From NCBI GenBank assembly GCA_907165135.1, contig OU015567.1:7378001-7442000 (forward strand): a stretch of 64,000 nucleotides of DNA. Direction: 5' to 3'. A program made the translations under genes and the position numbers. Below, in pieces: positions 2,025 to 17,985 of this stretch (its first letter is position 1; each line of letters begins with the position of its first letter). The notes under the pieces were generated by a model that was not told where the DNA came from, made no database searches, and saw nothing but the letters and a program-made list of their open reading frames with translations. The DNA comes from Oikopleura dioica (Eukaryota; Animalia; Chordata).

Positions 2025-3105
2025 CTTGACAGTTCTGAGGGTAACCGAATGAATTCCATATTTAATCAAGTCCGCATGGTTTCCCGAGCCGTATCCCGAT
2101 CCAGTTTGAAAGAGTTGTTTGAAAAAGAGCTTGGAGAAGTCCTGAATTCGATAAATTTCTGCCGAAGCGGTGTCGTTCATGATCCTCATCGACATTCCTT
2201 CCGAATGACCGCATCGTATCACAGCATTTACTGTAAGAAAATCATTTGAAATTGCATTCAAGAGGAACATACCGATGTCCTGATTGGTCATTTGGCCGTT
2301 ATCGCCTTCCATTTCCACATTGACGAAGGAAAAAGTCGGCGCGTCTCCCTTCAAAACAACGCCCGTTTGAGGCGAAGCAGCGGACAACTCCAACTCTGGA
2401 CCCTCGCATTCTTTGTTTTTATTCTCGAAATTGTTCTCCAGCCAGCACTGAATGCCCCGACGCCCATGGGTGGAAAAGATAAAGAAGATATCCTTGCCCC
2501 AGTGGGTTTGGTCGGAAATCATCGACATTAGCGCCATCCCGGTGCCGAACGCTGAATTGGTTACTTTCTCGTCCCAGCTGGCGATTGGGACGTTGATGAT
2601 GATACTTTCAGCGGCTGAACTGCCGATTGGGCAAACTCGAACGATGATGTTTGAAGAGGAAAGATCCGAGTAACTCCAGGATTGTTCTTCATATTTCAGC
2701 CTAAAAATAAGATTTTTGAAAACTTGAATCTTGCAATCGTCAATTCCATCATCATTTCTTTCCCCGAAATGGAGGCAAAGAAGGTTGCTAGAAAATCCTA
2801 CTGTACCTTAAAGTAGTAGCAGCCTTTTTAATCAAATTCTTCCTACAATCAGCAGTCACACAGTCTTCCATCCTCCTATTCATCACTCCCGCCAAACCCT
2901 TCACCGTCTGCGAATACTTTGGCGAAGCCATGCGCGGCTGTAACGCATTCTCATCAATATAAGTTCTAGCGTTGAATTGAGCTGAGCTCTGCATGGCCAG
3001 CCAACCAATGCCGCATAAAAAGCCGAGAGTTGAGAGCTTACTTCCGAATTTATTGATTTTAGCGCCGATATCTTTTGTTGAACTCGGGTCTGTTAGAAGC
3101 CCCAT
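2025..3105 (-). CDS. GPAA1: GPI-anchor transamidase subunit GAA1, N-terminal/lumenal half only visible
   Basis: MGLLTDP...RTYIDENAL at the N-terminus, WGKDIFF, EGDNGQMTNQD and GNHADLIKYGIHSVTLRT match remembered GAA1 motifs (MGLLSDP, RTYMSENA, WAKDI, EGLNGQLPNLD). The C-terminal TM bundle was not found in the window. Confidence 0.85.
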
Positions 3106-3282
3106 TTTTAAATCTGAAATCAAGGAAGAGTAACAACGAGTCGGTAAATTAGAAAAATAGATATATATTTTATGAGATTATAAGAAAATAAAATCAAAGT
3201 GAATGAAGCAAAAGGCCGAGAATGGGGAAGAAGGAACAAGATAGTACAGTAGCTTTTTTGAGCCGTGGAGTGGGAAGGGCAA

Positions 3283-5585
3283 TTATTTTCCTTTTTTGCC
3301 TTTGCCCTTTCCACCCTTCTTCTTCTTGCCTTTCATGAGCTTGCGGACCTTGTAGGAGCGGAAGAAGGCTTGAATTACAGTCGCGTTGAATGTCTTGTCT
3401 TCGAATTCTTTGCGTTCGCGCTCTTCTTGCTCTCTCTTTAGGCGGCGTTCTTCCATAATTGCGTCGTAGTCAACCTGAAACCGCAGTAAAGAAAAAAAGA
3501 CAGATAAACCCTTCACTTACTTTTAAAATAGCAAAGCGTTCCTTGAGTTCATCGAGCTGTTCCTTTTCCTCGTCATAAGCGTCCTGGACCTCTTCGAGTT
3601 GCTGCTGCTTCTCGATCATAAAGTCGTCATATTTGGCGATCCAGTTTTCGACCTCGTTCTCGATTCGGAATTTTTTACTTCGCAAGTTGAGTTCCACTTC
3701 GCGGTGCTCCACCACTAGCTTTTTCAGGTCCACTTCGAGCGGTTTTATCGCCTCGATTAAAGTTTTTTTGCGCTGCTCAGCATTTCGATTTTCATTAGCT
3801 CGTTCCTAAACAAAATGGGTCAGTCCTAAATTGAGGTAGATAGCATTTTTGATAAAGTCCTTTTAACACAAACTGTCAGCTTATATAAATACCGATCCAC
3901 GAGAAATAGATCATAATTAACTGACATGCAAAAGCCTTCCTAAATCTTGTACTACCACCATTTGGAATGAATAACAAACAACCAGAAATCATACTCGACT
4001 CAAATGAATATGCGACAAAAAGAATTTTTTACTTTCTTTAAAATGAATTCACTTTTATCTAGAATATTGAAAACATTTTTGAGATATTACAAATAAATAA
4101 AAAATTATATATTTCTCCATGTCCTTCTATATTTTATTTACAACCCTGCAAAAATGGGTTGTTCCAAGATATTAATCAGGGTTGTGCAAATATAAAAATG
4201 GTCACAGTTGGTTTTTTAACCCCTTTTCGCCGTACAAAAACCCGCAGAGAGTGAAAAATACTGTAGCATTCTTTTGAGAGAAACAAGGGTTCATGTCCAT
4301 AATATTTTTTATAAAATGACTTTTCAATTTATGCGGTTTCATGGGAGATGATCGTTGATTCTACATATTTATGAAAAAACACAATGAATCATTGACAATG
4401 ATCATTGACACGAAAAAACTTCGATTGTGGACAAAAATTTTGTACTAAAATGAATCTCAATCTATGTAAGAATACTCTGAAGGAAGCGTGAAAAAAATCA
4501 TCCGTATTTTGTGCTCAAATACTTTTCAATCGAAAACCACGATAAAAACTGCTAAATAAAAAAACCAATATAATTGTGTTACTTACTTGATCAGCATCAG
4601 AATTAGTTTTTTGCGCCATCGCTTCGGCATTTTTCTCAATATTCGCCAGCTGCGTTTTGAGCTCGCGAATGACTGTGGCTCGTTTTTCTGTTTCTTCTTT
4701 TTGATTCCTTCCGCGACGGAGAGTTCCTTCTCGACCTTCTGCGTCTGAGTGACGATCTCCTTGAGTCGCTGGTTCGACTTTCGAATGTACATTTCGCGGT
4801 TTTCTTCTTCCTTTTGCGTCATCGTCAGTCGGTCCACCATTCCAGAGCGCAGCTCGTCGATCAGAGAAGCCAGCGATTCCAGTCGAGCGTCCGATTTCGA
4901 GCTGCGGATTAAAGAACACAAGTTCGCGTCTTTTGAAACATCTCGCAGCGCGTTTCGGGTGAGAATTTTTAGCTCAGCCGCTGAAAAATGAGTTTATATG
5001 AGGACGAACAATTCATAATAGAAAAAAGCCGTTTGCGGCTTTCGAAACATCGAAAAACCTCGAAAAAAAATTTTAGCCGCATGCGGCTTTTTATTCAACG
5101 GAGAAAATTTCATTAACAAACTTGCTCAAAATAAGCCGCTAGCGGCTTTTCTTCTTTGAAATCTTCTTCGGTAAATGAATTTTTCGCCTTTGAAAAACCG
5201 CAAATTCGGCTTTTTGATTGAATCTCAAAGCGAAATTTCACGGGAAGAATTGAAAAGTACCTGGAGTAGATTTCTCCTGGGCCGCTTTTCTGAGAATGTG
5301 GCAGGACTCTGGAAATTGTTTGAACTGTTCAGCTGGGACCGACGCGAAGCCGGCGAGGAGAAGAAGCCGCCTGTGCAGTTCGTTGAAGACATACATGATT
5401 CGTTCCGCCTCGACGCAGGAAATCTTCTTTCGGACTTCGCGATACGACGCCGCCAGCTGCGCCGGATCCTGAATTATTTCATAACGATTTTCTATAGTAA
5501 CGATTCTTTCGTAAAATCCGTATTTTGACCATTACTGTACCTTTTTGGCGGCGTCTGGAGGCGGCCCAGAAACAGTGACCGTCAT
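3283..5585 (-). CDS. IQCD: IQ-motif dynein regulatory complex subunit DRC10
   Basis: Exons give KKISCVEAERIM..., coiled coil, RSKKFRIENEVENWIAKYD, IQ motif (VIQAFFRSYKVRK) and a Lys/Gly tail KGKKKKGGKGKGKKGK. Apparent 1-bp frameshift at ~4710. Confidence 0.85.
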
Positions 5586-6204
5586 TATTCTGAACTGGTG
5601 CAAATTTCAAACTGAGCAGAAATTCCAAAAAGGAGGGAAAATAAACGAGCGTTCTAGAAATCGCACTTTTTTCTAGACGGATATTTACAAGGCGATTAAG
5701 CCTCATTCTCGGACAGTAATTATTTGGCTTGAAATTTGAGTTTTTTTAGCAATTTCGTCAGACACGAAGTTTTTAAAGCAAAGGTAATAAAACACAATAA
5801 TTTTTAACAAATAATTTATTTTAAAAAATCATTAAGAAAACACCGAGAAAGCCGCTTGCGGCTCTAAAATTGATGAAGAACTCTTCATATTTGACACGAA
5901 TCGTGTTTCGACTCGAAAATTTCGGATTTTTTTTTGCATTTTTTTTCGCGATAATTTAAAATTGATAATTCTCTTTGAAAAATTGACTCTGACGACAGAA
6001 TATTTTTTTATCCAGGAAACATTCGGTAGTAGCGCCTGGGGTCAGGGAAAGGACAATAAACGCAATTTTTTGGTTTCTTTCTTTTTTAGCGCGAAATGAG
6101 TCAAAATGAGTTGCTTTGGCGGGGAAGGGCGCGCCAACGCGGGCCCAGCGCGCGCAAATTCGGACGAAAAAAAGATCTTCTCTTGTGGTTTGACATCTGT
6201 TGAA

Positions 6205-6742
6205 TCATTTTTGTTTTGGTTTATTCATAGTAAAGCTTTCGGATCTGATAGATCCATCTTCAGTACTAAAATAGTTGTAAAATTGTTGATCAGAAAACTC
6301 TTTTCACCTTTTTGAGAGGCTTGTAAGGGCACACTAAAGAACTTGAATGAGAAAATAAGAACAGATAAAATTTGGTCTAGAGAAGAATTTGATAAGACCT
6401 CGGTCTTGCAGACAGAATGTTTTTTGAAAATGTGTAGAAATAGACGGGCTTCGGAACATTTTCAAATTTAGACGGGCATTTTTGAAAATGTTCCGAAGCC
6501 CGTCTATTTCTACACATTTTCAAAAAACATTCTGTCTGCAAGACCGAGGTCTTATCAAATTCTTCTCTAGACCAAATTTTATCTGTTCTTATTTTCTCAT
6601 TCAAGTTCTTTAGTGTGCCCTTACAAGCCTCTCAAAAAGGTGAAAAGAGTTTTCTGATCAACAATTTTACAACTATTTTAGTACTGAAGATGGATCTATC
6701 AGATCCGAAAGCTTTACTATGAATAAACCAAAACAAAAATGA
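6205..6742. repeat. Perfect long inverted repeat: two 262-bp arms, 14-bp spacer
   Basis: 6205-6466 is the reverse complement of 6481-6742. Spacer is TTTAGACGGGCATT. Confidence 0.95.
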
Positions 6743-6916
6743 AAAAAAGATCCTTACTTTTTGAAAAACCATTTTTCGCCGCTTTTTTCGCTCTCATTCC
6801 GGTTTTCCCGAGTTGGTCTGAAGAAGAGATGAGTCGCACGTGATGCGAGCAAGAAGATCAGGGACTGGGAAAAAGGCTAAAGAAGAATTTAGAGACGAAA
6901 AAAGAAGGAAGAAAAA

Positions 6917-9098
6917 ATGGGAGCTCCGATTCACGAAGAACCTTTTACCAATAAATTTACAAAGAAAAAGGTTGGAAATTCATTCATTCCATTATTCACC
7001 CAAATCAGGAAAAGCCGCGTGCGGCTTTCGAGTCAAAAAGACAGTTCGTTTTCGATCAATTTTTGAGTCGAGAAATCTTTGAAAAAGACGCTTTTTTGAC
7101 TCGAAAGTCGTGTGCGGCTTTTTCCCTTTTCTCTTCATCTTTATCCATTTTTTCTTATTTCTAATCATCTTTTTGATTAGGAAAGCTTATCAAAAGATTC
7201 CTTGAAATAACTGAAGACTATCAAAGCATAAAATTCTCGAAGAATTTTTCCGAGGTGATAAAATTTCATTTTGACCGTTTTTTCCTCTTTGAAAAATGCT
7301 CTTCGGGAATTTAAACGGGTCCGATAACTTATCGCGTTTTTCATTGTTCGAGCTGGATAAATTCAAATTTCCATCACGTGACCTGATTAAAATTCCTCTA
7401 GAAATGAAGATGTTTTTGAACAGAACTTCTTATTCCCTTTTCTTTATGGTTTTTAGGAGATCGCCCGAGCAGGGTTCAAAATGTAGCAGTGTAGTAATGT
7501 AGCAATGTAGCAATTGCTACATTTTTGCTACATGTTGATGTAGCAGGTGTAGCATGTAGCAGCGTTCAAAAAGCGTGTAGCAAAGTGTAGCTTGCTACAT
7601 TGCTACATTTTTCTGGAGGTGAGGATTTTTATTATCAAAAGAGACGATTTATTCATAGCAAATATATTTTAATGTCTCTTTTGATTAATATTATTGATAT
7701 TTAGCTTAATTTCTATCTAGTTTGTCTTTAAGAAATTAAAAACCATAAAAAAATTCATATATAATTGAGATCTTATCGAAAATGGTAGCAGACCGGCATA
7801 ATTTTATGTAGCAAGTGTAGCATGTAGCAGCGGTTTTTTAAGGGGAATGTAGCACATGTAGCATGTAGCAGGGACTTTTCTTGAGGGATGTAGCACGTGT
7901 AGCATGTAGCAGCAATATATTGCTACATTTCGAACCCTGCGCCCGAGGGCTACGAGGAGTGATCAGGTGCGTCGAAGATGCAGCTGGAGCCCAGTTCGCG
8001 GCTAAAACGATCAGAAAAACGCAAAAAGGGCAGAATATCGTGGACGAGATCGAAATGGAAATGGCCGCCCTGAATCTTTGTGAAGATGTTGCTACTGTAG
8101 TGAACTTGCACGCCGTCTACAAGACCAAAAGGGACTACACTTTCATTCTTGACTATCTGCCTAAGGATCTCCACTCGGAAGTCGAGGTAAGCGGAAATTA
8201 AGGAGGATAGGGTTGCTAATTTAGGGCTCTTAGAAAGACGAGCCGATGAATGAAGCGGAAGTTATTCAAATCATTAGGGATCTGTTGAAGACGCTGAACT
8301 ATTTGCATGAGAGACAGATTATTCACCTAGGTAAGGAGAAATTTGTTGATAATGGAAAATATTGAAGAAACTGTTTGCTGACCGTTTTCTTTCAGATCTG
8401 AAGCCAGAAAACATCCTGATCGACGAGGAAAAGAAAATCTATCTTTGCGACTTTGGCATGTCGAAAATGCTGGAAAATTCAAAAGAAACCTGCCGAGTTG
8501 CTGGAACGACCGAATACTGCTCTCCAGAACAGATTCAGTTCGAGCCGCTTTCTGCTGCTTCCGATATGTGGGCAGTTGGAGTCATCGCTTTCGTCTTGCT
8601 TTCCAAGACAAGTCCTTTCGAAAACGGCGAAAAGCACGAGACGCAAAATGCGGTGATCAACTGCATTTACGACTTTGAAGGGGAAGCCTGGTCTGACAGA
8701 AGTGCTCTCGCCAAAAGCTTTATTCAAACATTGCTGATTCGCGAACCAAAGGTAAATTTGCTTCAAAGATACAAAAAAAAGTGGCACAAAGGCGGGAAAA
8801 AAGGACAAGCGAAATTTTCAATTCGGTCAAATATTTGTTAGAAAAAATGCTTTTTCTAACAAAAATTTCGTAGAAACGAGCGAGCGCTTCTGAAGCTCTA
8901 CTTCATCCTTGGCTCGAGTCTCCGGATAAAAACGGCGCAGAAATGGCTGCCCCACCGAAAATAGCTAGAAGATTGAGCAAACGATCATCTTCTGTTGCTC
9001 TTTTCGGGTTGAACGATATCAATCTGAATCGGTCACTCGATTCGGCCGTCCAAGAAGTGATCGAGCTCCCACCGAAAAAGATCAAAAGCGATAGGTAG
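6917..9098 (+). CDS. DAPK-family (DRAK/STK17-like) Ser/Thr kinase, exon 2 interrupted by a MITE
   Basis: Spliced MGAPIHEEPFTNKFTKKK|EIAR[MITE][58 protein letters not shown]. Confidence 0.85.
7013..7119. repeat. Short inverted-repeat element (~110 bp) with AGCCGC-NN-GCGGCT ends
   Basis: AAAGCCGCGTGCGGCTTTCGAGTCAAAAA ... TTTTTGACTCGAAAGTCGTGTGCGGCTTT in kinase intron 1. Confidence 0.6.
7470..7939. mobile_element. hAT-like MITE, 470 bp
   Basis: 19-bp TIR CAGGGTTC(A/G)AAATGTAGCA, 8-bp TSD CGCCCGAG (7462-7469 and 7940-7947), about 20 subterminal TGTAGCA/TGCTACA motifs. Confidence 0.93.
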
Positions 9099-9439
9099 CT
9101 AGCAATCCCCATTTGATGAATTTTCTTACAGCTTTTTTCAGCCAAGAGTGATCTGAATCGTCTTCAATAATCTACCTCCGTTTGTTTGTTCTTACTGTAT
9201 CCATATCAGACATACAGTACTTCTAGTATCTACTCATACAGTTCAAAGTTCCGTTCGCTCTAGAATCTCCAACAACTGAAATCATCACCGACCGTACTTT
9301 CAAAAAGAAAATCTTCCAAATTCGTACTCAGAGACAACTTTAAAACGTACCCTGCCCGAATCAGTTTCCAAAAAATGACAAAATGACAACAACAAGGACT
9401 AACGCTTACTGATTTCAAGCAAAGACTCTTCAGAATGAG

Positions 9440-11654
9440 ATGATAATTCAAAACCTAGTTGAAGATTTTTACCGTCAGCTAGATTTAACGAAACCAGTTC
9501 TCATATTATGCGGAATCGATGTGGATGCCATGGCGGCCACGCGCATCCTGATGGCCATGTTTCAAGCAGACCTTATTCAATATAGACTCAAGGTAATAAA
9601 CACTCATTTCATTCCGTTTCTCAACCTCCTTTTAGCCAGTAAACACGAGACAAGCCCTGTGCCAAGCAATTTACGATGAGAAGGCGAAGATCGAGCAATT
9701 TGTGCTTCTCAACGTAGGCTCCACTGTAGAATTTTTCAATGTCGACCCAGATGGATTCGAATTCACCTCAGAAGATCAGAAACCGCTCTTTGGGGACGAT
9801 GACAACCTCACTTTGTATATTATAGACTCACACAGACCTATCAATCTTCTTAAAAACGGATCTCAAAGAACTTATTTTTCCCCTAAATTTTTACTCTATT
9901 TTTCCAATTTCAAAGTTCATTTTGCGATCCTTAATCAGTGTTTTTTCCGACCTCTCGATGTCCAGTAGAATTTTTGTACATGTAGCTGAAGACGAAATCG
10001 AAAATATTCCCCTCCACGAAGACGTTTTCTCGTCCGACTCTGAAGATGAAAGTGGAGACGAAGGTTTGTCTCTTACTCTGCTACGTTTCTTCTTACTGTG
10101 TTTTCAAGATAATCTGATGGAACGCATGGCTCGCAGGACGGAGAAAGCCCAGCGTAGTGAAGCCAGACACGCACGAGTTGCGGAATACGAAGAGTACACA
10201 TTTTGCGGCCCAAGTACGGCAATAACAGTATTCGGTAAGGATCGTCTTCAACTTTCATACTTGAATGTTGTGTTTCTTAGATCTTGCACAAAAACTTTCA
10301 AAAGACACAATCGCTTCCTTGTGGTGGGGAATCGTCGGAATCACGGATCAGTATGTCTCTGGCCGTGTTCGACCTGAACAGTATAAAACTAATGTATATA
10401 AATATATGCTTCATCAGCATACACAAAGGTAATCTGACAATCATCGCTTCTCTGACGAGCTTCGATTTTCTCAGACTTCAATCAAAAGCTGACGCAAATA
10501 ATCGCGCTCAACTCCTGTTAGAACCACTGGAAGATCTTCAACTTCCTCTTTACAGACATTGGAACGTCAGCGAGGCCCTTACTCATTCACTCCCAGTTGC
10601 GTCAGGTACTCTTCCTTGCTTCCAACTCCCGCTCATTTCTTCCATAGCCATTAAAGTTTGGACCGGTTCCGGAACCCGCAAAATAAAAGAACTCGTTGCT
10701 CAAATTGGCCTTCCACTCACCCAAGCGGGAGAAAAGTATCACTACATGGAGGAGCGCTTCAAAACCGACTTTCCAAAGCAACTAGAGCAGAAAGCGCCGA
10801 ATTTTGGAATCAAGAATCTCAAAGTGACAGCGTTCACGGCTCAGCGAGGATTTGGTTATAAATATACTGCTGCTGATACGGCCATTGCGATAAATGCTCT
10901 ATTAGAATTGGTAAGAAAGACTGCGCTAGACTCATGATTATTTTCGGGCTTCTCTTAGACAAGTGGAGACGATTTAGTCAAAAACTTCGAAGAAGCTTTG
11001 GAAGCGCTTAGAACAGAGCAACCGACAATGTGCCGCATGCAAGACGGAATCGAACTCGCCAAGGGCCAGCTGCGCGCTATTCTAAACACGATAAACTCAC
11101 AGATAGAAACGAATAATATAATCAACGCTGGACCGTTTTTGTACATGAACATGAAAGAAAGCCCAGACAATCACATGTTCGCCCATCCTGTCAGTATACG
11201 ACTTCTCTGTAAGTTACAGTCAAAGACTCTTGTACTTACTCTTTCCAGCTGCGTATCTTCTCCACTCATTCTGCCGATCCCAGCCAAAACAGCGTCGTGA
11301 GAAAATCCGAGCTCTTCCCCTGGTTCTTGCGGCTCCTCGTGGAGAAACAGCGTAAGTGTTCAAATACAAATACTTGATGATCAAAATGAATTCAATTTTA
11401 GTCCTGGGAAAAAGCTTGTTTGCGGCTGCCCACCACTTGGCTCTACCTCAAATAAAAACCCCTTCGGAAAGGCATTCAAAGAAGCTGGCGCTCGCTCACA
11501 GGCACGAATCGACTACCAGTTTATGGGTAATTTTCAGCCACTTTTTAATAAGCATTTCATCTTGTTTTTAGACGATAGCTTACTCCAAATCGACACGGAC
11601 GATTTTCTCAAGTTCATGGAAGCCCTCGTTGTAGAACTCTCGATGAACGACTAA
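9440..11654 (+). CDS. CDC45: Cell division control protein 45
   Basis: DVDAMAATRILMAMFQADLIQY, IIDSHRP, acidic loop, LPLYRHWNVSEAL, GLPLTQA, C-terminal DFLKFMEALV. Confidence 0.93.
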
Positions 11655-11893
11655 AATGAAGAAGATCTAACTTATAGAAACGTCCTATCTTTCAACACAT
11701 CCTCATATACATTCCACTCATCATCTTCGGTAGCATACTTTTACTAAATATTTTCCGAGCACTCTTTTTTTAATTTTTCGAAAAACGCAACTTTTGGAAC
11801 ACGGAGAATCTTTTCAATTGAAAAATTCATTTGAATTTACTTGTTGAAAACATTCTTTCTGATGACCATCCTGACCAGAGTTTGAAATTTTCG

Positions 11894-12100
11894 TGACTCG
11901 CGAGCGGCTCACTTGAGAGCGAGCGAGCACGAGCATGATGCTCTTTGTGCTCCCGAGCGCATTTATTTCAGAGTTCGCGCTCTTTGCGCTCGCGAGCGCA
12001 TTTCATTTCGCGCTCTCGCTCTCTTGGCTCTCGAGCACTGGTCGAATTGTGCTCTCGCTCGATCGGCTCTCGAGCTGAAAAAACTGACTCGCGAGCAGCT
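11894..12100. repeat. Array of GCTC(G/T/C)CGAGC-type palindromic motifs, copy 1
   Basis: Repeated CTCGCGAGC / GCTCTCGAGC / CTCTCGCTC. Confidence 0.7.
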
Positions 12101-12339
12101 TCCAAGGGCCTCAAATGATTCGGCGGCCCCGTGACTAATTCCATATGAGTCCCTGTCACAGGACTTAGCACCTCGCGGTGGGCATGTTTTATCTGTTTAC
12201 TCTCGGCTTTTCGCATTCTGCTGCCGAGATTACGGACCTAATGAAGCTAACATAAAACTGAAAACACCAAAAATTGATCCTCAAAGAAATTTATTTATGA
12301 AAGTGAATAATTATGCGAAAAAATTATTCTTTTAATTTT

Positions 12340-12580
12340 GCTCGCGAGCCGCTCGTGAGTCAATTCCATGGCGAGCACGAGAGCAGCCGCTCCCGCTCGT
12401 CTAGCTCCCGAGCATTGTCGAGATATGCGCTCGTGCTCTCTGCGCTCGCGAGCGGGTTCAAATTTGGGCTCGTGCTCTTTTGGCTCTCGAGCCAACTCAT
12501 TTTCATGCTCCCGCTCCCCTGCTCTCAGAGCAATGATAAATTTTTGCTCTCGCTCTTTTCGCTCGCGAGCATTTGCGAGC
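12340..12580. repeat. Array of GCTC(G/T/C)CGAGC-type palindromic motifs, copy 2
   Basis: Same motif vocabulary as 11894-12100. Confidence 0.7.
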
Positions 12581-13126
12581 ATTTCAAACTCTGATCCTGA
12601 CTATCAAGCGTGAAAGGTAAAGTAAGTTATCTCTTCTTTGGACTCTTTTGTTCACTCAAGTCTTCCTTGATTTCACTTTATGAGTCCTTTTTTCTCGCTT
12701 TAGGCCTATGATTAGAATATTTAAATTACAGTCTTAATTAAATCTCATGCAATTAAAGTCTGTTCCCATCATTCCCAGATACCAAAATCATCTCAAAAAG
12801 AAAGGCCTCTCATACTGAATGCTCCCGGTCCGCCCAATCTTACAAATTGTTCTTCTCTTTTCCAAGAGATTTATCATTGTAAAGAAATACCAACCTTTTG
12901 CTGATCAAAAAAGCACCACTGCCACTTTTTACAAGTGAAACAATAAAATAAAGTTCCAAAGAAAATTTTGTCTTCATTTCCTTGCCTTCATTTTTTGAAG
13001 AAAAAAGAAAAGAAACGCGCTATATCTTTTCATTATCGATCATGAGCTTTTTGCCACTTGGAACTGTTTCTGCAGTGAACTAATCCCAATGTGCCATTCT
13101 CGCTCACGGACTCTTCCTTTCTCAGA

Positions 13127-17509: not shown

Positions 17510-17985
17510 ATGACAGAAACGGCTCCAGAAAAAGTAGAAATCCTTCTCAGAGCAGTTGGCGATGCGCCAGTGTTGAAAAAGAACAAATTCAAATTGAATA
17601 GAACGCAGAAAATTGCATTCGTTTCCGATTTCTTGCGAAAAGCGACGAAATGCGAAGGAGATGAACGTATTTTTCTGGTGAGATTTTTCACTATCACGTT
17701 TTCTTAGAATTTTCAGTACATTCATCAAGCTTTCTCGCCAACAATGGACTCACCAATTGGAACGCTCTTTGATAACCACGCTAGGCCCGGTTCTATACTC
17801 GCAGAATCTCTAGAATAAGGCATTATTTACTTTCTAAAAAGGAGAATATCCTCAGTTATAAGAAATCTTCTGGTAAGAAAGGGCGTGATTTTCAAGAAAA
17901 TTTTCCATTATTTTTAACGAAATAGAACCGAAAAAGTGACAACAAACTTGTTGTCCATTACAGTAAGACTCCTGCTTGGGGATGA
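17510..17985 (+). CDS. ATG12: Autophagy ubiquitin-like protein ATG12
   Basis: KVEILLRAVGDAPVLKKNKF...FLYIHQAFSP...LFDNHASDNKLVVHYSKTPAWG*; second intron GC-AG. Confidence 0.95.

Follow-up and report, generated by a model that had tools for sequence, protein, structure and literature searches.

The locus analysed here raises the question of whether a transposable element lodged in a coding exon of a chordate kinase gene is an intron in the making or a broken allele. The window, by which we mean the whole 64-kb stretch of Oikopleura dioica DNA that was analysed (64,000 nucleotides, in whose coordinates all positions are given), carries a protein kinase gene which the first-pass annotation had described as interrupted by a hAT MITE within the exon for the glycine-rich loop; the element was taken to be either a candidate new intron or the cause of a null allele. 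The gene lies on the plus strand and begins with exon 1 (MGAPIHEEPFTNKFTKKK, 6917-6970), followed by a GT-AG intron of 486 nt (6971-7456); both are placed by a plankton metatranscriptome contig (X1) that joins 6970 to 7457, and the N-terminus of an orthologous ORF (P0022) is the same. The acceptor of intron 1 (...tttttag) is followed by the first 13 nt of exon 2 (GAGATCGCCCGAG, 7457-7469) and then directly by the MITE terminus CAGGGTTCAAAATGTAGCA, so that these 13 nt are severed from the remainder of the exon (7948-8186), which encodes the end of the Gly loop, the VAIK lysine region, and the N-lobe. Exons 3-6 (8234-8330, 8396-8751, 8874-9094, and 9142-9153) are all open and separated by GT-AG introns, in agreement with the earlier statement that the kinase is otherwise intact. 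The direct 6970-to-7457 join in X1 also led us to reject a further exon, at 7181-7254, from the gene model. When the MITE and one copy of its target-site duplication (TSD) are deleted, the sequence EIARGLRGVIRC is restored in frame, as the first-pass annotation had claimed for the removal of 470 bp plus one TSD, and the six exons encode a kinase of 329 aa. With the MITE in place and unspliced, the frame stops after 27 residues (EIARAGFKM-stop).

The surroundings of the gene hold further structures. Upstream, at 6205-6742, is a perfect palindrome of two 262-nt arms (100% complementary, 14-nt spacer), about 175 nt before the kinase start codon; either a foldback element or an artefact of long-read assembly could account for it. 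Between 7010 and 7122, intron 1 holds a hairpin element whose 30-nt arms are 87% complementary; the DNA run X30, which carries the same species label, has a replacement or shortening here (7037 joined to 7092 and 7108 to 7170, with other letters between), so that intron 1 is structurally polymorphic too. Downstream, about 290 nt after the kinase and on the same strand, lies CDC45 (9440-11654; 561 aa in the public annotation), and the arrangement of the two genes could be operon-like.

The element itself occupies 7470-7939 (plus strand, 470 bp) and has no long ORF of its own; within it we found no internal ORF of at least 40 aa, and an Rfam search gave only sub-threshold chance matches inside it. 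Its terminal inverted repeat (TIR), CAGGGTTCAAAATGTAGCA, pairs with the other end at 18 of 19 positions, and the two ends of the MITE are the only matches to this TIR in the 64-kb window, where 0.02 are expected by chance. The TIR has the form CAGGGTTC(A/G)AAATGTAGCA, that is, a short TIR starting with YARNG as in hAT elements. The MITE is flanked on both sides by a perfect 8-bp TSD, CGCCCGAG, again of hAT length: the left copy (7462-7469, plus strand) is coding, being part of Ala-Arg-Gly, and is the single copy present in every empty-site contig described below, and the right copy (7940-7947, plus strand) ends in an AG that is a candidate acceptor. At the right end the element reads ...TGCTACATTTCGAACCCTG, followed by the TSD CGCCCGAG and then by the exon sequence GGCTACGAGGAGTGATCAGGTGC. 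The motif TGTAGCA/TGCTACA occurs 21 times within the MITE, clustered in both subterminal regions, and four times in the other 63.5 kb of the window; such subterminal short repeats (putative transposase-binding sites) together with the lack of coding capacity are expected of a hAT MITE. Other copies of the MITE in X30 diverge from the window exactly at 7470 and 7939/7940, and read depth in that run reaches 2,600-7,200 over the MITE ends against ~100 on the flanks (25-70 times that of the unique flanks). The exact divergence and this depth indicate that these are real ends of a mobile element, present in multiple genomic copies with common termini. The 8-bp TSD, the CAGGG terminus, and the subterminal repeats together form the hAT pattern, and every feature of hAT MITEs that we looked for was found in this putative non-autonomous element, which bears out its earlier classification. 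The 64-kb window holds no autonomous partner element that encodes a hAT transposase and bears matching TIRs.

A second hAT-like MITE of 718 bp (CAGAGTTT) lies in the window at 11876-12593, with a perfect 8-bp TSD (ATCCTGAC) and a TIR (CAGAGTTTGAAAT, 13/14) similar to the CAGGGTTCAAAAT terminus. No ORF spans its reconstructed empty site, which appears to be non-coding, and a scan of the window for other TIR-plus-TSD elements in exons gave no second case.

The gene into which the MITE has inserted is, judged from protein comparison, a conserved Ser/Thr kinase of the STK17/DRAK-like type (DAPK family). Its best match among solved structures is 7que (STK17A/DRAK1, E 2.4e-55), and 3lm0 (STK17B, 1.5e-48) likewise ranks above DAPK1-3. 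The motif AAK..RK..KGQ...EI..E of STK17A/DRAK1 and STK17B/DRAK2 aligns with the Oikopleura kinase, whereas its first loop glycine is replaced by Ala (ARGLRG) and its C-terminal tail is Oikopleura-specific. The insertion point falls in codon 23; because EIARGLRGV lines up with ELGRGKFAV of the STK17A/DRAK1 structure, the interrupted codon is that of the second glycine of the G-x-G-x-x-G ATP-binding loop. A metatranscriptome contig of 1.3 kb from a diverged lineage encodes a full-length orthologue (P0022, 339 aa) that matches the window gene in architecture and has an uninterrupted N-terminus (MGAPILEEPFTNKFTKKKEIARGLRGVIRC) and a complete Pkinase domain (6.1e-60, profile positions 2-263). Across lineages, the exon of 80 aa retains 86% amino acid identity at 73-82% nucleotide identity, with an invariant loop sequence; given this high protein conservation, the gene is under purifying selection and strong constraint. 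Between the window and the marine metagenome contig L008, 16 of 693 coding nucleotides differ and only two amino acids; at both of these the window keeps the outgroup state. There are therefore no non-synonymous changes on the branch of the window allele, and any time during which it could have decayed must be short.

We then compared the site across public DNA assemblies, and the empty site was found in X30, in four same-lineage marine metagenome contigs (L001, L007, L008 (Tara Oceans), and L009), and in three contigs of diverged lineages (L002-L004). These contigs were reached through exon-sized ORFs from public assemblies. In X30, a contig joins 7461 to 7940, skipping 478 nt with 8 nt of ambiguity, and its flanks are ~3% diverged from the window; the exons of L001, L007, L008, and L009 are 96-98% identical to the window, and L002-L004 are at 73-82% nucleotide identity. 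At the empty sites, EIARGLRGVIRC is uninterrupted and the TSD is present as a single copy. The MITE is thus absent from six of six other same-lineage samples, all from a haplogroup that differs from the window by 2-8%, and from the three diverged lineages. The insertion is therefore derived and apparently young; a recent event fits the perfect TSD and the 18/19 match of the TIRs. Four DNA runs from a single study of 2020, and a 2025 run labelled as another species, contain 68-86% of the 31-mers of 7300-8100, and the allele may be common in the culture behind these runs. In a scan of JGI metagenomes, the exon pattern gave no matches and the TIR pattern gave two contigs, both only chance 19-mer matches.

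Transcript evidence for the gene consists of X1, the one transcript found. In this contig intron 1 is spliced and the MITE is absent: it reads ...AAAAAG/GAGATCGCCCGAG/GGCTACG..., which is the exact empty-site sequence. The gene is therefore expressed and its intron 1 is spliced in the wild. X1 also carries two variants, 8015 A>G and 8041 T>A, that belong to the empty-site haplogroup (X30, L001/L007/L008). Since it carries SNPs of the empty haplotype, X1 is no demonstration that the MITE was spliced out. Two bulk RNA runs of 2026 (X5 and X6) contained no reads of the window kinase. Eight and 12 of their reads, respectively, fell at 8392-8480, over the HRD/DLKPEN motif, at 90-95% likeness; these were assigned to another kinase, as their loose ends read ...GFAHR/DLKPEN and are unlike the window upstream of the motif. 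One DNA contig of X30 also matches 8392-8480 at 90-95% with a differing upstream end, and it likewise belongs to another kinase gene.

The insertion has left its mark on the published annotation. The public gene model OKI2018_I69.chr2.g6009 (8055-9151, plus strand; 271 aa) starts at Met59, and the product of its transcript Oidioi.mRNA.OKI2018_I69.chr2.g6009.t1 (P0021) equals residues 59-329 of the restored kinase exactly; its ATG, at 8055, lies on the 3' side of the MITE. Over 7,097 bases the window shows no difference from the corresponding NCBI locus (L010; GCA_907165135.1, OU015567.1), where the gene start is the same, and this places the window on chr2 of Okinawan O. dioica, at about 7.378-7.442 Mb. 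Exon 1 (6917-6970) and the stretch 7457-8054 are unannotated in the public model, and its product, without the Gly loop and the AAK lysine, matches the Pkinase profile only from position 48. This N-terminal truncation of g6009 is caused by the MITE. In the OKI2018_I69 annotation, which drew on intron hints from RNA-seq, 11% of introns are non-canonical (PMC8008620), and hence it could have bridged the MITE had junction reads existed; that the model starts past the MITE is weak evidence against splicing. In a protein search for transcripts derived from carriers, no OKI-lineage ORF from RNA assemblies was found, whether full-length or starting at Met59, and the NCBI model was the only hit.

Could the spliceosome remove the element? 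We computed donor options with the AG at 7946-7947 as acceptor, and the arithmetic of the first-pass annotation held. The donor ccc/GA (7467) gives a product 3 nt too short, in which the key Gly is lost (EIARLRG); cag/GG (7473) gives one 3 nt too long, in which one Ala is added (EIARAGLRG); and agg/GT (7474), the sole canonical donor in the MITE, leaves 4 extra nt, shifts the frame, and ends in a stop. Exact removal with this acceptor takes the donor gag/CA (7470) and hence a CA-AG intron. Scarless removal in general takes out 478 nt by nine equivalent cuts (CG..TG, GC..GC, CC..CG, CC..GC, CG..CC, GA..CC, AG..CG, GC..GA, and CA..AG), and none of the nine falls in the GT-AG or G*-AG classes, so that the in-register splice sites of a transposon-derived intron are not seen here. 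O. dioica splices ~11-12% G*-AG introns (PMC8008620, PMC7072748), and at its GA donors the exonic AG is highly conserved and an A follows the GA (PMC7072748). The candidate contexts here are ccc/GAGCAG, cag/GGTTCA, and agg/GTTCAA; the GA candidate has neither the exonic AG nor the following A, and the GG candidate has the AG only. Upstream of the candidate acceptor the context is AACCCTGCGCCCGAG, without a T tract, whereas all five real introns of the kinase have ...AG/GT donors and T-rich acceptors. Splicing of the MITE would leave a micro-exon of 10-16 nt after the intron 1 acceptor, and skipping that micro-exon, from the 6971 donor to 7948, reads GGC TAC GAG GAG TGA with an early stop. A long hairpin is predicted for the RNA of this region (-164.9 kcal/mol, z -7.4); its stem, in which the two TIRs are paired, covers the candidate donors and could hinder U1 binding or, conversely, draw the ends together. 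The splice geometry is unfavourable. A separate intron in the window with a non-GT donor is the GC...AG intron of the ATG12 gene (17785-17936), removal of which restores ...FDNHAS/DNKLVVHYSKTPAWG; it has short inverted repeats (GGTTCTAT / ATAGAACC) near its ends, and no target-site duplication was seen at it.

On balance, the locus probably represents a recent loss-of-function, at best leaky, insertion allele in the reference haplotype. A non-autonomous hAT-type MITE would have inserted lately into codon 23 of a conserved STK17/DRAK-like kinase, on the haplotype that became the OKI2018_I69 reference, and a laboratory culture of high heterozygosity would harbour the allele, perhaps in the heterozygous state, without its forming a functioning new intron. 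Loss of function is the most likely outcome since the unspliced message stops after 27 residues and the product of the GT at 7474 (+4) with the AG also stops; we infer that carriers make no in-frame message. The assembled individual was ~3.6% heterozygous and haplotigs were purged (PMC8008620), which makes a heterozygous null allele in the reference plausible. The null allele that the first-pass annotation had offered as its alternative fits better than its intron in the making, which stands unproven and disfavoured: the MITE is absent from the other samples, the transcript is of the empty haplotype, the annotation starts past the MITE, and the donors are poor. Loss of function has points against it, namely that the remainder of the gene is fully intact, that cag/GG...AG adds just one Ala before the loop glycine, that O. 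dioica does splice G*-AG introns, and that most 31-mers of the region recur in several DNA runs.

These same points lend some weight to a nascent intron, in which the spliceosome of carriers would remove the MITE in frame through the AG of the right TSD and a non-GT donor, giving a working or near-working kinase and a presence/absence intron polymorphism. G*-AG introns make up 11-12% of those of O. dioica (PMC7072748), the GG candidate is preceded by the conserved exonic AG, the acceptor AG comes from the TSD, in line with the introner model, the gene outside the insertion is intact and its branch carries no non-synonymous change, the predicted TIR stem would bring both ends together, and MITE introns of Fritillaria borealis are removed as the element plus its 3' TSD copy (PMC11282704), the same geometry as the CA..AG cut. 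We nevertheless judge a nascent intron rather unlikely. The sole transcript without the MITE carries SNPs of the empty allele, an annotation made with RNA hints left the MITE unbridged, and all six other same-lineage samples are without the insertion. A donor starting with G cannot give scarless removal, neither G-starting non-GT candidate has an A at +3, the GA candidate also has no exonic AG, a T tract is missing at the acceptor, the GT that starts one base further on would compete and shift the frame, and a micro-exon of 10-16 nt would need to be recognized beside an intron of 486 nt. That the MITE is spliced in frame specifically in Okinawan carriers, by GG-AG with an added Ala or by exact CA-AG aided by the TIR stem, is similarly doubtful. 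A tolerated truncation is still less probable: a protein started at Met59, for instance after SL trans-splicing to an AG past the MITE, would serve a role independent of kinase activity. O. dioica trans-splices many mRNAs, and the public model g6009.t1 is exactly the Met59 ORF; such a product, however, would have neither the Gly loop nor the AAK lysine and would match the Pkinase profile only from position 48, and the N-terminus it dispenses with is strongly conserved across lineages. An error of long-read assembly or polishing that put the MITE into the exon is hardly credible. The OKI2018_I69 assembly is Nanopore-based (PMC8008620), and the perfect palindrome with 262-nt arms, 175 nt before the gene, might point to irregularities of the assembly in this region. 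However, a perfect 8-bp TSD exactly flanking complete TIRs is the signature of transposition and not of misassembly, and the 2020 and 2025 DNA runs contain 68-86% of the 31-mers, which exceeds what the flanks (~41%) or the element (~59%) could supply by themselves.

The kind of event is ordinary, being a polymorphic MITE insertion in a coding exon. Here, in a reference genome that is widely used, an inserted transposon disrupts a conserved kinase gene, and the truncated N-terminus of g6009 is explained, which is relevant to users of the annotation. The locus also offers a clean natural test, with filled and empty alleles in one cryptic species that has rapid intron turnover and relaxed 5' splice sites. 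If splicing in frame were true, a chordate would be polymorphic for the presence or absence of an intron that a transposon has only just created, with the empty ancestral allele still segregating, and hAT insertions at AG/G targets would suggest themselves as the source of the G*-AG class of O. dioica.

Among known systems, Ds/Ds1 elements in maize exons, studied by Wessler and colleagues from the late 1980s to 1991, were reportedly spliced imprecisely to give leaky alleles. They resemble the present element in being non-autonomous and of hAT type, with an 8-bp TSD, in a coding exon, with several cryptic donors in or beside the terminus, and in that products in frame or off by a few nucleotides are possible. 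Unlike maize, where splicing was observed, the MITE here is known from DNA, sits 13 nt past an acceptor, and has a chordate host with a relaxed G*-AG 5' splice rule. In another larvacean, F. borealis, many AG-AC/AG-AT MITE introns with a 3-nt TAC duplication are described, for which splicing by a modified U2 spliceosome was demonstrated (Henriet et al. 2019, as relayed in PMC11282704). The likeness lies in a MITE with TIRs and TSD in coding sequence whose removal with the 3' TSD is scarless; the differences are that the TSD here is 8 bp, the copy in the gene is single, polymorphic, and known from DNA alone, and scarless removal would be CA-AG, which is not among the intron classes reported for O. 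dioica. With introners (Huff, Zilberman and Roy 2016; Gozashti et al. 2022), the element shares the arrangement in which the TSD makes one splice site and the element the other. Introners, however, carry a good splice site and are removed scarlessly or in frame at hundreds of sites, whereas the MITE in the kinase gene has no good in-register donor and is the sole copy, and the only exon insertion, seen in the window.
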